Of a stretch of 11,729 nucleotides of DNA, positions 3,650-7,556 are shown one piece after another. Location of the stretch: the sequence record MN496306.1. One strand, 5' to 3'. Both the position numbers and the translations under genes were made by a program. The notes under the pieces are model-generated. The model ran no database searches and was not told the DNA's origin. It saw only the letters and a list, made by a program, of their open reading frames with translations. Each line of letters starts with the position of its first letter. The stretch's first letter is position 1.

Positions 3650-3669
3650 ATTCCCCTAATGTATTATGA

Positions 3670-3699
3670 TTGCCAAAAGAGGTTTATAAGCTCTGGCAA
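3670..3699 (-). promoter_or_regulatory. Putative int promoter: TATA (+ strand TTTATAAG, 3683-3690) flanked by an imperfect inverted repeat; SD-like AGGGGA before ATG 3649
   Basis: TATA-to-start spacing is plausible; arms TTGCC(AAA)AGAG and CTCTGGCAA. Confidence 0.55.
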
Positions 3700-3820
3700 C
3701 TCGTAAATTTTTGCCGTTAAAAAACGTAGAATTGAAAGTAGACGGCAAAGATTCCTAGGCAGTAATACTAAAAATATCGTATTATTATTATATAGTTATT
3801 TGAGCGAATTACCTATTACG

Positions 3821-3914
3821 CTAATAGCAGCATTGCTGCTACTAATAGCAGCGATTTTGGTATCGCTGCTAATAGCAGCGATTTAGCAAAACATTGCTGC
3901 TAATAGCAGCATTG
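3821..3914. repeat. Array of four CTAATAGCAGC units, partly within palindromes GCTGCTA-A-TAGCAGC
   Basis: Copies at 3821, 3842, 3869 and 3900; 21-bp palindrome ATCGCTGCTA-A-TAGCAGCGAT at 3862-3882. Confidence 0.9.
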
Positions 3915-3919
3915 TCGTA

Positions 3920-4474
3920 TTACTTTACGTAGACTGAAAGCCATCTCTTGAAACTTTTAGGCCTCATCCAGTCTTTCCATCTAGTGATAACATAGCTTCT
4001 TTCGTTTGTAGCAAACTCATTCGCAATTGTAGCTTTTCCATGTTTTTGCAATGTTCTCAACAGTGTGAAAGGCATGAATCTAACTTCACCCTCATTATCG
4101 GCAATATTGCAAAATGCCGTTCTAAATCCCTTAGATTCTAAGATTTCCGCAACACTGACTTTTACTCCTAACACAGCAACTATGGATCCTTTCAGATCCA
4201 TCCTATGGGCTCTGGCTATACTCTGGCCTTTTGTAAAAGAAGTACCAGTTATATCGATATAGAGCCTAAAGCGGGGAATGTAAAAATCAAACTTCTTGAA
4301 AGGATCCCCTTCCCATGTTTCGTCTACTCTGTCAGTTGACAATACACCAATTCCATTCACTGTAATGTCCTTTTCCTTAAGATTTAGGACCAAACGTAGC
4401 CATTTTTTCGCAATCTCTTCCCTAATTGAAGATATTGCCCAATACTTTTCGTATTTATCCTTCAGTTCGCTCAT
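3920..4474 (-). CDS. Putative PD-(D/E)XK-fold nuclease, D244/D212-like (184 aa)
   Basis: FDFYIP...YIDITGTS motif; position between int and d63; start overlaps the d63 stop. Confidence 0.7.
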   Translation of the reverse strand: MSELKDKYEKYWAISSIREEIAKKWLRLVLNLKEKDITVNGIGVLSTDRVDETWEGDPFKKFDFYIPRFRLYIDITGTSFTKGQSIARAHRMDLKGSIVAVLGVKVSVAEILESKGFRTAFCNIADNEGEVRFMPFTLLRTLQKHGKATIANEFATNERSYVITRWKDWMRPKSFKRWLSVYVK

Positions 4475-5105: not shown

Positions 5106-5340
5106 TTTTTACCACCATCTGGTCGTTTGACTTCCAAACAATCCTTCTTGGGAAGTCTAATACCTCACAATAACCTTCTTCGTCTCTTTCGCACAAGATT
5201 TCCACCATCTTCAATATGTTGTATGCAGTAGATGGTGCTATTTCGAATTGTATTATCAAGTCTTCTACGGACAATTCCCCCTTCTTTTTGAGAATTTGAA
5301 GCGCGGACTTAGCTTTTTGGAACGAGTTTTGTCTGGGCAT
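5098..5340 (-). CDS. f112: Winged-helix transcription regulator, SSV1 F112 homologue (80 aa, lacks the long C-terminal tail)
   Basis: ILKKKGELSVEDLIIQFEIAPSTAYNI...ICER matches the F112 pattern; first gene after the T5-like promoter; SD GAGGGTGA. Confidence 0.85.
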   Translation of the reverse strand: MPRQNSFQKAKSALQILKKKGELSVEDLIIQFEIAPSTAYNILKMVEILCERDEEGYCEVLDFPRRIVWKSNDQMVVKNE

Positions 5341-5346
5341 ATCTTT

Positions 5347-5411
5347 TCACCCTCTATTCTTCTTCTATTCATTCTGAGTTTAAAAGTTTTACTCTTCTAT
5401 TCTTCTTCTTT
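5347..5411 (-). promoter_or_regulatory. T5-like early promoter (TATA 5379-5385) flanked by two tandem 11-bp operator pairs
   Basis: On the - strand: AAAGAAGAAGA ATAGAAGAGTA aaac TTTTAAA ctcagaatga ATAGAAGAAGA ATAGAGGGTGA; mirrors 6129-6193. Confidence 0.8.
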
Positions 5412-5440
5412 TCATTTTAGTTTCAACCAAGTGAGTATTC

Positions 5441-5473: not shown

Positions 5474-5620
5474 ATGGGGTGTCAGAGAGCAGAACTACTG
5501 GCCCTTCTTGAGTATATTGAAGAAGAATGCACGAAGAAAGACTGCATAAGCGTAGTGAGAGAGATAAAAGAGCGCGTAAAGAAGAACGCAATGCTAGAGG
5601 CAATCAACAGCCTGTACTAA
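5474..5620 (+). CDS. b49: SSV1 B49 homologue (48 aa, MGCQRAELLALLEYIEEECTKKDCISVVREIKERVKKNAMLEAINSLY); not in the ORF track
   Basis: Hand translation; MGC..ELL.LLEYI..EC...C....E..ERVKK.A..EAIN.L pattern as in B49; same position as the SSV1 Tind gene. Confidence 0.85.
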   Translation: MGCQRAELLALLEYIEEECTKKDCISVVREIKERVKKNAMLEAINSLY

Positions 5621-5632
5621 GCCCAACTCTTC

Positions 5633-5886
5633 TTTATTCTTTTTCTACACACATACACACAAATAGGGGACTCCATCCCCGGGGTCCAGTTTTTGCGGAG
5701 TCTGACAGACGTCTGACAGATTTTTTTATTCTTTTTCTACACACATACACACATATACACACAGAGTACAAAAGATTGTTTTATAGTGTTTTTGTCTGTC
5801 AGACATCTGACAGACGGTTTTTTCTAAACCCACTTTTTTCTTAGTGTTTGTTAATGTGTGTATATGTGTGTATGTGTGTAGAAAAA
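5633..5886. repeat. Repeat-rich non-coding region, putative replication origin
   Basis: 29-bp exact direct repeat (5633-5661, 5725-5753); 32-bp perfect inverted repeat (5732-5763, 5855-5886); four TCTG-W-CAGA units (5701, 5712, 5795, 5806). The origin role is inferred from position. Confidence 0.75.
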
Positions 5887-5908
5887 ATGAATAGACAGAA
5901 AAAAAAGG

Positions 5909-6073
5909 CTACGACTTCATGAGCTCTTCTATCCTACGTCTTACTGCATCTATCACAAACTCTTGTCTGCTAGTGTACCCAGCTTTCCCCATCTTCAAAA
6001 TTTCATCTATTTGGTCTGCCAATGATTTTGAAATTTTCACCCCTACCCATTCGATTTTATCTTTTTTAGGCAT
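5909..6073 (-). CDS. Ribbon-helix-helix repressor at the SSV1 F55 position (54 aa, MPKKDKIEWVGVKISKSLADQIDEILKMGKAGYTSRQEFVIDAVRRRIEELMKS); not in the ORF track
   Basis: Hand translation; RHH pattern (beta strand WVGVKIS, helix, GY.SR.EFV..AVR); SD GAGGT; divergent from the T6-like promoter. Confidence 0.85.
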   Translation of the reverse strand: MPKKDKIEWVGVKISKSLADQIDEILKMGKAGYTSRQEFVIDAVRRRIEELMKS

Positions 6074-6128
6074 CTTCGCTACCTCTATTATTCTTATAGT
6101 ATGTTTATTATTAAAAAGAAGATGGTGG

Positions 6129-6193
6129 ATAGAAGTAGAATAGAAGAGTAAAGTTTAAATATGAGAGTAGAATAGAAGTAGAATAGAGGTGGC
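6129..6193 (+). promoter_or_regulatory. T6-like early promoter (TATA TTTAAATA 6154-6161) flanked by two tandem 11-bp operator pairs
   Basis: ATAGAAGTAGA ATAGAAGAGTA (6129-6150) and ATAGAAGTAGA ATAGAGGTGGC (6172-6193). Confidence 0.8.
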
Positions 6194-6196
6194 AAA

Positions 6197-6499
6197 ATGG
6201 AAACCCCCAAACCCAAATACGAAATTGTTGGGGAAGAAGAAATACATTTTTTTACAAGAATATTTGAAGAAGAAGCGTCCTATAATAATGACAAATTCAT
6301 CGAGATAGAATTTGTCAAGCCTTTTGCTGATACTGGCAGATTTTATGCTGGTGACGCAAGAATCGAATATGTTGAAAGAGAGCTAAAATACATATTACAA
6401 TTATATAAAATATATAACAAAACAGCTAATGGCGAATTACAGTCCCAAATCAAGAAAGAGATACTAATAACTTTAGCGAAAATTGCCGGCATGTTGTGA
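6197..6499 (+). CDS. a100: SSV1 A100-like protein (100 aa)
   Basis: C-terminal ELKYILQLYKIY...IKKEILITLAKI resembles A100; first T6 gene; SD GAGGTGG. Confidence 0.75.
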   Translation: METPKPKYEIVGEEEIHFFTRIFEEEASYNNDKFIEIEFVKPFADTGRFYAGDARIEYVERELKYILQLYKIYNKTANGELQSQIKKEILITLAKIAGML

Positions 6500-6505
6500 T
6501 GCAAG

Positions 6506-6676
6506 ATGAAAGTAGTGACGTTTAAGCTAGAAGATGACTTGTTAAGGATTTTAGACTTATACGCTATCAAGACGAAAACGACAAGAAGCGACGTAATTCG
6601 CCAAGCATTGATGTTGTTATTGAAGGATGAAATAAACAAAGCGAGAGCAAAAGTTGAAACAATCCCGCTGAGGTGA
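6506..6676 (+). CDS. aCcr1: RHH regulator of the aCcr1 clade (56 aa, MKVVTFKLEDDLLRILDLYAIKTKTTRSDVIRQALMLLLKDEINKARAKVETIPLR); not in the ORF track
   Basis: Hand translation; shares VVTFK, DLL..LD.YAIK, RS..IR.A and terminal AKVE.I.L with Sulfolobales aCcr1 as I recall it. Confidence 0.82.
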   Translation: MKVVTFKLEDDLLRILDLYAIKTKTTRSDVIRQALMLLLKDEINKARAKVETIPLR

Positions 6677-6680
6677 AACT

Positions 6681-6848
6681 ATGTATTACCAATGTATAAA
6701 GTGCGGACAGATTTTTCCCAAGAGAAAACAAATAAGGACCCATCTTAGAACACAGCACAAAGTTAATGAAATCGTAGTTGCTTTCTTCATCTCAGCTTTT
6801 CCCCACTTTGGGTCTACAGAAAAAGAAGGGTGGGAATATGATTTATGA
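6681..6848 (+). CDS. Single C2H2 zinc-finger protein, SSV1 A45-like (55 aa, MYYQCIKCGQIFPKRKQIRTHLRTQH...); not in the ORF track
   Basis: C-x2-C-x12-H-x4-H; SD GAGGTGA at 6670-6676. Confidence 0.85.
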   Translation: MYYQCIKCGQIFPKRKQIRTHLRTQHKVNEIVVAFFISAFPHFGSTEKEGWEYDL

Positions 6849-7155
6849 TATAATATTGTTTTGCATACTCGAGTTTCACGATTATTTTAGTACTGTCTTG
6901 GCACTAAGAAAAACCCCTCAAATGCAAGAGATAAACCCAATACTGCACCCCGTACTTTCTTCACCAATAAAATTTGCAATCTTCAAGTTCGGGGCTGTTA
7001 CGATTGTAGTCTTGTTGATTCTGATTTTTTGGGAGCTTAACCCAATAGTCTTTGGATACACATTACTTGGTTTAGAGTTGTTTGAAGGGGCTGTGGTTTG
7101 CAATAACTTATATTTTTTATATGTTGCCTCTAAAAGTCAGAAAGGGATGGTATGA
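6838..7155 (+). CDS. Small multi-pass membrane protein (105 aa from ATG 6838), DUF5658 / SSV1 C102-like
   Basis: D..ST..AL......E.NP motif and three hydrophobic segments; SD GGGTGGG at 6828-6834; the longer track start (6778) would overlap the zinc-finger gene. Confidence 0.75.
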   Translation: MIYDIILFCILEFHDYFSTVLALRKTPQMQEINPILHPVLSSPIKFAIFKFGAVTIVVLLILIFWELNPIVFGYTLLGLELFEGAVVCNNLYFLYVASKSQKGMV

Positions 7156-7556
7156 TGAGCACTCCAGATACTCCTAATAGAGAATCAGGCGCCAAAAGTA
7201 GCCTGATTGATAACCACCCAAAAATTTCGTTACATGTGACTCGCAAAGAATTGGAAACATACCATAAACTTGACAGAGACAAGAAAAGGCTGATTCGTTC
7301 AATAGTTAGAACGTTACTTCAACACCCGGAATTGCTAGATTACGCTGACTTCTGGCAAAAGTTTTTCGCAAGTAAGATTGTAAGCGAATATGTCTGCCCG
7401 TTGTGTTTGATGCCCTTTCCTACCAGATTTTCTCTCATACAGCATATCCGATATGACGAACACGAGACTGAGTGCAAACTTTGCAAGAAGAAGTTTGTGA
7501 ACACAGACGCGTTAATGGACCATATTTGCAAAAAACATAACATCTGCATTTCCTAG
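7152..7556 (+). CDS. b129: Double C2H2 zinc-finger DNA-binding protein, SSV1 B129 homologue (134 aa)
   Basis: VCPLCLMPF....L.QHIRY.EH..C..CKK.F..TD...DH.CKKHNIC.S. Confidence 0.95.
   Translation: MMSTPDTPNRESGAKSSLIDNHPKISLHVTRKELETYHKLDRDKKRLIRSIVRTLLQHPELLDYADFWQKFFASKIVSEYVCPLCLMPFPTRFSLIQHIRYDEHETECKLCKKKFVNTDALMDHICKKHNICIS

Follow-up and report, generated by a model that had tools for sequence, protein, structure and literature searches.

Five related ribbon-helix-helix (RHH) genes occur in Sulfolobales, and the products aCcr1, aCcr2 (SiRe_1157, SIL_RS14755, Saci_1391), and aCcr3 all bind PcdvA and all enlarge cells when overexpressed (PMC13199686, 2026). Relatives are also encoded by viruses: of 153 genomes of archaeal viruses, Li et al. 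found 87 with the gp21 cluster, and the Fuselloviridae are one of five virus families for which Yang et al. 2023 list homologues of aCcr1. Overexpression of SIRV2 gp21, SMV3 gp63, or ATV gp29 results in enlarged cells with extra chromosomes, and that of gp21 or gp63 also in growth retardation; SIRV2 gp21 binds the motif AGTATTA, and binding to the region of the cdvA promoter is documented for purified homologues from viruses (PMC9976878, PMC9976892). Among the fuselloviruses, the C80 cluster comprises divergent two-RHH proteins separate from aCcr1, and the C80 homologues of the Sulfolobus spindle-shaped viruses (SSVs) SSV19-22 are highly similar to aCcr1 (2022 minireview, PMC9608457). The subject of this study is the member of this group encoded at positions 6506-6676 of MN496306.1, the complete circular genome of SSV20, to which the 11,729-bp window analyzed here is 100% identical from end to end. 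We estimate the probability at roughly 0.55 that this protein is a dimeric repressor of the aCcr family, encoded by the second gene of a T6-like early operon, which represses host cdvA and delays cytokinesis. The presence of an aCcr1-like gene in SSV19-22 is already known as a bioinformatic statement, and the initial annotation of the sequence was right that the clade is described; new are the intermediate character of the protein between aCcr1 and aCcr2, its borderline score with the family model aCcr1_fam, the detailed parallel to F55 and the T6 operon of SSV1, and a conserved cluster of boxes upstream of int.

A hot spring in the Philippines is the source of SSV20, an alphafusellovirus with Sulfolobus sp. 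E5-1 as host; the closest kin of the virus are SSV21, SSV22, and SSV19. The gene extends on the plus strand from an ATG at 6506 to a TGA at 6674-6676; its product, MKVVTFKLEDDLLRILDLYAIKTKTTRSDVIRQALMLLLKDEINKARAKVETIPLR, is labeled “putative transcriptional regulator” in GenBank and has a ribbon-helix-helix fold with a single domain. It matches the Pfam family RHH_1 (E=5.1e-9, 36.2 bits; cut-off 20.5), and an AlphaFold2 model based on a 50-sequence alignment (mean predicted local distance difference test score, pLDDT, 83.8) has an extended N-terminal segment, helices at residues 10-23 and 27-50, and four disordered residues at its end. In Foldseek superpositions, the model fits CopG, Arc, SvtR, and RHH antitoxins with a root-mean-square deviation of about 1 Å over about 41 residues, and a PDB sequence search with the protein yielded no solved close relative. 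Open reading frame (ORF), annotation, Pfam match, and structural model thus bear out the 56-aa RHH protein that had initially been read at this position.

The reference for a comparison with the host came from a profile scan of species-representative genomes, which recovered a 58-aa protein conserved across Sulfolobales; the scan used an alignment as query and returned host relatives, whereas the 56-aa protein alone gave no matches. A protein search assigned the copies in S. islandicus (P0116) and S. acidocaldarius (P0134). P0116 is the authentic aCcr1 of S. islandicus, because of its length of 58 aa, its residues R2/K7/R27 and Y23/M38/L43/R47 (PMC9976878), its position, and its synteny: the gene is located at about 0.17-0.19 Mb, where SiRe_0197 should lie, and shares with that of P0134 a neighborhood consisting of an ABC transporter, an AsnC-type gene, a 104-105-aa gene, the RHH gene, a metallo-beta-lactamase-fold gene, and an HMGL-like gene. 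P0134 carries T23, L38, and T47 as in PMC9976878 but has I43 instead of T43 and one further change.

The SSV20 protein aligns with P0116 over its full length (30/58 identities, 52%; BLASTP, E=4e-18), and both the VVTFK strand and the A.VE.I.L tail lie within the match. The initial annotation had described the protein as roughly half identical to aCcr1, including these two elements, on the basis of its own version of the aCcr1 sequence; the estimate stands against the real P0116, from which that version differs at three positions (47, 52, and 57) and is otherwise correct. The residues R2, K7, and R27 of aCcr1, which are essential for DNA binding and phenotype (PMC9976878), correspond to K2, K7, and R27 in the SSV20 protein, and T5 is present as well; SIRV2 gp21, which is functional, likewise has a Lys at the position of R2. 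F6 and K7 are invariant in 50 family members, and R27 is also invariant in a 5-sequence alignment with the tested viral homologues. The C-terminal ARAKVETIPLR matches the tail of aCcr1 (VPVA[KR]VEKI[KR]L type) with a 3-residue gap.

A tblastn search of phage and archaeal-virus records recovered full-length proteins with 41-53% identity in rudiviruses, bicaudaviruses, turriviruses, AFV1, YNP1, and ASV1. Identity to the overexpressed proteins SIRV2 gp21, SMV3 gp63, and ATV gp29 is 49-51%; gp29 (50%) was compared separately, because the best match in ATV is gp27 (ORF59b). The 52% identity to SisCcr1, the 49-51% identity to tested viral homologues, and the retention of the DNA-binding residues support a function as an aCcr-type repressor. 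Repression of host division by the SSV20 protein is plausible from its homology to tested proteins, to which its identity is about 50%. Since aCcr1, aCcr2, and aCcr3 all bind PcdvA and enlarge cells, this functional prediction is independent of the clade to which the protein belongs.

The affiliation with the family as a whole is supported by the curated NCBIfam equivalog model NF053762 (aCcr1_fam; cut-off 60 bits), which covers all these paralogues and is by far the best NCBIfam family for the SSV20 protein, with 59.4 bits (E=2e-16) versus 17 bits for the next. The score is 0.6 bit below the cut-off; controls reach 78-79 bits (aCcr1), 73 bits (aCcr2-type), 64.5-72 bits (tested viral homologues), and 75 bits (ASV1 A59). 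A second conserved host clade in the genome scan comprises proteins of 41-48 aa without the KVE.I.L tail. It probably represents aCcr2, because its residues fit the published numbering (T5/T6, with T5 in S. acidocaldarius; S24 and T49 of S. islandicus, with a one-residue offset) and because in one S. acidocaldarius genome the genes of P0134 (58 aa) and P0230 (43 aa) are 433 kb apart, in agreement with the 449 genes by which Saci_0942 is distant from Saci_1391.

Hidden Markov models (HMMs) built for the two clades from 17 aCcr1-type and 13 aCcr2-type host proteins tie on the full SSV20 protein (61.8 bits for aCcr1 versus 63.5 for aCcr2), and its core alone favors aCcr2 (56.1 versus 62.6). By contrast, SMV3 gp63 (106 versus 53), SIRV2 gp21 (85 versus 50), ATV gp29 (96 versus 49), and ASV1 A59 favor the aCcr1 model by 35-54 bits, whereas SIRV9 gp19 favors that of aCcr2 (72 versus 58). 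In maximum-likelihood trees of 44 sequences, the SSV20 protein falls outside the aCcr1-type clade: a branch with support of 97/96 (starred) sets 27 aCcr1-type rows apart from SSV20 and the aCcr2-type rows, and a second branch of 94/92 (78/83 with core columns) parts SSV20 from the aCcr2-type rows, leaving it on the internode. The alignments of 41-58 columns limit the resolution, and the trees contain no verified sequences of aCcr3, SiRe_1373, and SiRe_0131; an 82-row tree is unresolved, with aCcr2-type proteins as the nearest neighbors of SSV20. At ten diagnostic columns, where host aCcr1-type and aCcr2-type proteins have no residue in common, the SSV20 protein has the aCcr1 state in three, the aCcr2 state in five, and neither in two. 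Its identity to aCcr2-type proteins is 67% over 42 aa (L012) and 59% (P0230, Saci_1391-type), and its core contains the motifs LDLYAIK and RSDVIRQA (LDLYA.N and RSE[IV]IR[ED]A in the clade), with K22 replacing the clade-invariant N22.

By its sequence, the SSV20 protein is clearly not a typical copy of aCcr1 but appears to belong to the aCcr family as a divergent member, in which the tail resembles that of aCcr1 and the core leans toward aCcr2; because the alignments are short, this placement is not robust. The aCcr1-type assignment of the initial annotation is not supported by the starred branch, the tie of the clade models, and the diagnostic columns. Clustering outside the aCcr1 clade, which had been named in advance as evidence against its reading, was found in part, in that the protein lies outside the clade and yet adjacent to it. 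The closest non-SSV relative of the SSV20 core is a 103-aa metagenomic tandem-RHH protein (P0002; 61% identity). A third aCcr-like type of 62-69 aa, which ends in KVQEL (a tail related to that of aCcr1) or GREL, lacks a conserved chromosomal locus and occurs in integrated elements next to integrase genes (L085-L088 in S. islandicus; L030, L039); its 62-aa S. islandicus representative P0241 was considered as a candidate for aCcr3 and rejected, because it is located in integrated elements adjoining integrases.

The protein sequence is identical in SSV19, SSV20, SSV21, SSV22, and two proviruses of Sulfolobus sp. E11-6. Among these copies, the gene has three differences, all synonymous and at third codon positions, and none that is non-synonymous, while the 150-nt flanks are only 75-86% identical; invariance of the protein while its flanks diverge is consistent with selection and supports the repressor reading. 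The proviruses are both SSV19-like and reside in the chromosome of strain E11-6 (CP045706.1; L075, L080). One of them is represented in RefSeq by WP_238842145.1, which is called from the wrong start and has only 46 aa; a mis-started E11-6 provirus copy was also the single match in a word-indexed protein search with the 56-aa protein.

The gene order between 6197 and 7556 (A-100-like, RHH, zinc finger, DUF5658, B-129-like) matches that of the T6 operon of SSV1 (A-100, A-132, C-80, A-79, A-45, C-102b, B-129), so that the RHH gene, which starts 6 nt after the stop codon of the A-100-like gene and is second in the operon, occupies the slot of C-80. The promoters are also alike. That of SSV1 T6 reads ...tagatagagtatagatagagtAAAGTTTAAATActtatatagatagagtatagatagaggg...ATG and that of SSV20 ...atagaagtagaatagaagagtAAAGTTTAAATAtgagagtagaatagaagtagaatagagg...ATG; box A is the same, and in both it is enclosed by repeats, but the sequence of the repeat differs. 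The operator consensus of F55 in SSV1, ATAGATAGAGT, has no exact counterpart in SSV20, whose operators are a related but different repeat. The string GTAGAATAGA occurs exactly three times within 52 bp at the T6-like promoter and four times in the whole genome. Inverted copies are found upstream of the divergent T5-like operon, with one-mismatch matches at 5353 and 5396 and a start codon at 5340 on the minus strand.

Homologues of F55 and B-49 are both encoded between the T5-like and T6-like operons. In SSV1, F55 binds the repeats of the T5, T6, and Tind promoters and is released after UV damage (PMC9608457); by analogy, its SSV20 homologue is a candidate carrier-state repressor acting on the operators. 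Similarity between the F55 homologue, itself an RHH protein, and the 56-aa protein is not detectable. The gene order of T6, box A with its flanking repeats, and the homologues of F55 and B-49 support the reading as an early-operon repressor. They also sustain the operator-flanked, early T6-like operon of the initial annotation, whose coupling to induction appears well founded by homology with F55 and T6 of SSV1 (Table 1). The 2022 minireview (PMC9608457) gives F55 as restricted to SSV1; SSV20 has a clear homologue. The record MN496306 annotates, instead of the B-49-like ORF, an overlapping 105-aa ORF at 5527-5844.

Pattern scans found no aCcr box in the T6-like promoter, and simple autoregulation at this promoter is therefore not proposed. 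Other members of the family have boxes close to their own genes: the palindrome AGTAWTACT is located 15-23 nt upstream of the start codon of SMV3 gp63 (L003 578-586) and, in three contigs of Desulfurococcales (L031 3966-3974; L036 3871-3879; L061 3912-3920), not more than about 130 nt upstream of an RHH gene. These positions hint that some members of the family regulate themselves; no box of this kind precedes the operon of SSV20.

Table 1. Features of the SSV20 genome (MN496306.1) that bear on the function and control of the 56-aa RHH protein.
Feature	Position	Strand	Remarks
aCcr-family RHH gene	6506..6676	+	56 aa, QGA87247.1; C80 slot of T6-like operon
A-100 homologue (weak, SSV1), first gene of operon	6197..6499	+	BLASTP 37%/41 aa, E=4e-7; phrog_4746
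C2H2 zinc-finger gene, A-79-like position	6681..6848	+	55 aa; weak Pfam zf-C2H2; phrog_6283, E=5e-11
DUF5658 membrane-protein gene, SSV1 C-102b-like	6838..7155	+	PF18902 recorded for product; phrog_7761
B-129-like double zinc-finger gene, last of operon	7152..7556	+	Pfam B129_C2H2-zf, E=6e-9; phrog_9259, E=1e-48
T6-like promoter	6129..6187	+	box A AAAGTTTAAATA at 6150-6161; tandem operator repeats ATAGAAGTAGAATAGA at 6129, 6161, 6172
Inverted operator copies upstream of divergent T5-like operon	5344..5416	-	I4-I6, 27 nt, 78-89% complementary to 6126-6196
F55 homologue (RHH)	5909..6073	-	63% to SSV1 F55, E=6e-22
B-49 (Tind) homologue, unannotated in GenBank record	5474..5620	+	53% to SSV1 B-49, E=2e-16; phrog_25221, E=2e-17
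int-upstream region with candidate aCcr-type boxes	3661..3924		motif matches
Palindrome AGTAATACT	3761-3769		
Box AATAATAC	3779-3786	-	
Box AGTAATAC	3917-3924	-	
GTATTA seed	3661-3666		between int TATA box (3683-3689) and int ATG (3649)

All three strict matches to AGTAWTAC in the SSV20 genome are located within 300 nt upstream of the int start. None of 1000 first-order Markov simulations placed at least three strict sites in this window, and the same is true for SSV19, with the caveats that one palindromic site enters the count on each strand, that the region is AT-rich, and that the three genomes compared are homologous there; in SSV1, three of the four strict matches fall in the corresponding window. 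The GTATTA seeds follow suit, with 4 of 11 in the intergenic region of about 270 nt upstream of int. A double box, AGTAATACT-ACTTTTTT-AGTATTAC(C/T), is conserved in SSV1, SSV19, the M.03 (Kamchatka) isolate, SSV-RH, and SEV, and this also holds where the sequence upstream of it diverges; SSV6 and ASV1 have a weaker form, and SSV5 has none. To judge from this distribution, the boxes are real, non-random, and general to many fuselloviruses, including SSV1. The initial annotation was right in placing candidate boxes at int, but they do not represent a wiring specific to SSV20, because they are shared with SSV1, whose C80 is not aCcr1-like, and with others (SSV-RH, the M.03 isolate, SEV).

We found no paper that describes the int-upstream boxes as aCcr sites, and they could instead be sites of another factor or a hairpin-forming signal. 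It is a doubtful idea that the double box, AGTAATACT-N8-AGTATTAC near -137 and -120, and the GTATTA seed are genuine aCcr operators, by which host repressors would gate the SSV integrase, and that the SSV19-22 protein, once released from F55 control on induction, would also work this gate. If true, integration and excision, viral replication, and the division cycle of the host would be coupled through one small RHH family. In the same intergenic region, between the nuclease gene and int (3821-3912), there are also four copies of the palindrome GCTGCTATTAGCAGC, with CTAATAGCAGC on the plus strand at 3821, 3842, 3869, and 3900. The aligned region of SSV1 lacks these copies, which could form an array for protein binding or an element resembling an origin.

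The proposed repressor would act as follows. In the carrier state, the F55 homologue would sit on the tandem operators and occupy the T6-like promoter; on induction, it would leave them, and the T6-like operon would be transcribed. The 56-aa protein would dimerize and insert its N-terminal strand (K2-V3-V4-T5-F6-K7) into aCcr boxes of the GTATTA type, so that host promoters with such boxes would be repressed. The best-documented target of the family is cdvA, and its repression would delay cytokinesis by the endosomal sorting complexes required for transport (ESCRT) while DNA synthesis goes on. The protein may act also on the box-rich int promoter region of the virus. Several points weigh against this scheme. 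Infection with SIRV2 itself proceeds without cell enlargement, and host aCcr1 is unable to replace gp21 in SIRV2, so that the viral homologues may do more than, or other than, block division. Contrary to the 2026 study, Li et al. found no phenotype for overexpression of aCcr2. The SSV20 protein is the most divergent of those compared with aCcr1_fam (59.4 versus 64.5-79 bits), and it falls outside the aCcr1-type clade. Moreover, aCcr boxes are not enriched in the genome at large (AGTATTA, 2 versus 3.1 expected; DRTRDTAC, 14 versus 15.5; AGTAWTA, 6 versus 6.0); a genome-wide viral aCcr regulon was accordingly dropped in view of these chance frequencies, and only the cluster upstream of int was kept.

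The failure of host aCcr1 to substitute for gp21 during SIRV2 infection would also fit a protein that mainly regulates viral genes, as in the fuselloviral C80 function, for instance at the int-upstream boxes, with no significant effect on host division. The C80 slot is a soft-core fusellovirus gene, all strict aCcr-type boxes are upstream of int, with a GTATTA seed even between its TATA box and ATG, and these boxes are conserved in SSVs with divergent C80; in addition, a block of division looks costly for viruses that are non-lytic and persist in a carrier state. Nevertheless, the SSV20 protein is far closer to host aCcr1 and aCcr2 (52-62%) than to the C80 of SSV1 (46% over 35 aa), and it shares its recognition strand with proteins that bind promoters of the host, so that a mainly viral role seems rather unlikely; binding to viral and to host boxes is, moreover, not mutually exclusive.

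The aCcr2-leaning core raises another possibility, namely an aCcr2-like or hybrid factor that would serve as a broad constitutive brake escaping or exploiting the host kinase aCcrK, or would form mixed dimers that alter the activity of host aCcr proteins. The preference of the core for the aCcr2 model, the aCcr2-type nature of the nearest tree neighbors and of the relatives with the highest identities, and the five aCcr2-like diagnostic columns all point in this direction, as do T23, T25, and T26 in the loop where aCcr2 has its regulatory Ser (S24 in S. islandicus numbering). The protein has, however, kept the aCcr1-type tail that is missing from aCcr2, T23 is also present in aCcr1 of S. acidocaldarius, so that the Thr is not diagnostic, and heterodimerization is pure speculation; we regard such a factor as improbable. 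Even less credible is a small RHH protein unrelated to the family, for instance an antitoxin or a generic repressor of the CopG type, that resembles aCcr only by its fold. RHH proteins are short and mutually similar, the Foldseek matches include many antitoxins, and the NCBIfam score is slightly below the cut-off, but 52-67% identity to aCcr proteins across the domain (E 1e-17 to 1e-18), a next-best NCBIfam family of only 17 bits, and a specific tail motif shared with aCcr1 make this very hard to uphold. An antitoxin in particular was rejected, because no partner toxin gene adjoins the RHH gene among the ORFs and the annotation of SSV20.

Elsewhere in the window, the region between the B-49-like and F55-like genes (5630-5890) contains inverted repeats that are rich in CA/TG and have perfect arms of 32 nt (5732-5763 and 5855-5886), repeated palindromes of the form GTCTGACAGAC, and more terminator-like hairpins than expected (8 observed versus 1.5), and is a candidate replication origin or regulatory hub. 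Among the viral relatives, an identical SIRV-like gp21 gene (MKIVTFKIPDEMLLLLEAYAMKHKMNRSEVIRLAIEKLVVDEMKNEPVPKAKVEKIKL) is present in assemblies labeled Colwellia asteriadis, Streptomyces gamaensis, and Planomonospora alba (L027, L028, L029); its occurrence in these three bacterial assemblies is almost certainly due to contamination with rudivirus or Sulfolobales DNA.

Viral copies of aCcr currently offer the best clue to the ways in which Sulfolobales viruses manipulate the ESCRT-based, eukaryote-like division cycle of their hosts. Fuselloviruses are temperate, non-lytic, and genetically tractable, and a 12-kb SSV with such a gene under an F55-type switch would be a compact model in which to study when and why viruses slow the division of their host. 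The present analysis sharpens the questions of which paralogue is mimicked, whether there is a division phenotype, and whether the int boxes belong to the same circuit.

Compared with the systems described so far, the SSV20 protein shares with host aCcr1 (SiRe_0197, SiL_0190, Saci_0942) the single RHH domain, a similar length (56 versus 58 aa), the.VVTFK strand, K7 and R27, and the A[KR]VE.I.L tail, but it has aCcr2-type residues at L18, K24, T26, and L39 and a tail that is three residues shorter, and its gene is viral and part of an F55-type, operator-controlled operon, whereas that of aCcr1 has a conserved chromosomal locus. With aCcr2 (SiRe_1157, SIL_RS14755, Saci_1391), it shares the highest similarity of the core (59-67% over 41-42 aa), the motifs LDLYAI and RS.VIR.AL, and a Ser/Thr-rich loop before helix 2; aCcr2 proteins, however, have only 41-49 aa and lack the KVE.I.L tail, whereas the SSV20 protein has 56 aa and a tail of the aCcr1 type.

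The C80 of SSV1 (ORF C-80) occupies the same T6 slot between the A-100 and zinc-finger genes and also contains an RHH, but it has 80 aa, with an N-terminal extension from MKARVEYIKL and the RHH at residues 39-80. It is 46% identical over only 35 aa (its residues 39-73) and scores 18 bits with the aCcr1-clade model. The two-part architecture that is typical of C80 (about 66-80 aa with an N-terminal extension) does not apply to the SSV20 protein, in which a single RHH begins at residue 1. The start of typical fuselloviral C80 proteins, MKARVEYIKLP, corresponds to the aCcr1 tail motif A[KR]VEKIKL but is N-terminal to the RHH (L068 6510-6752, SSV1 C-80; L070 2438-2638), which suggests an origin of C80 from an aCcr-like ancestor that was tandem or permuted.

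The tested viral homologues (SIRV2 gp21, SMV3 gp63, ATV gp29, and STIV gp35, as named in PMC9976892) resemble the SSV20 protein in their single RHH, strand, and tail (45-51% identity), but they stem from rudiviruses, bicaudaviruses, and turriviruses, whereas SSV20 is a 12-kb temperate fusellovirus. Among fuselloviruses, Acidianus spindle-shaped virus 1 (ASV1) also has a protein with a single RHH in the C80 slot, A59, whose similarity to Saci_0942 was already noted in its 2009-era annotation. Since A59 is clearly of the aCcr1 type (110 versus 57 bits) and only 46% identical to the SSV20 protein, the two genes are not close relatives, and fuselloviruses may have acquired them separately.

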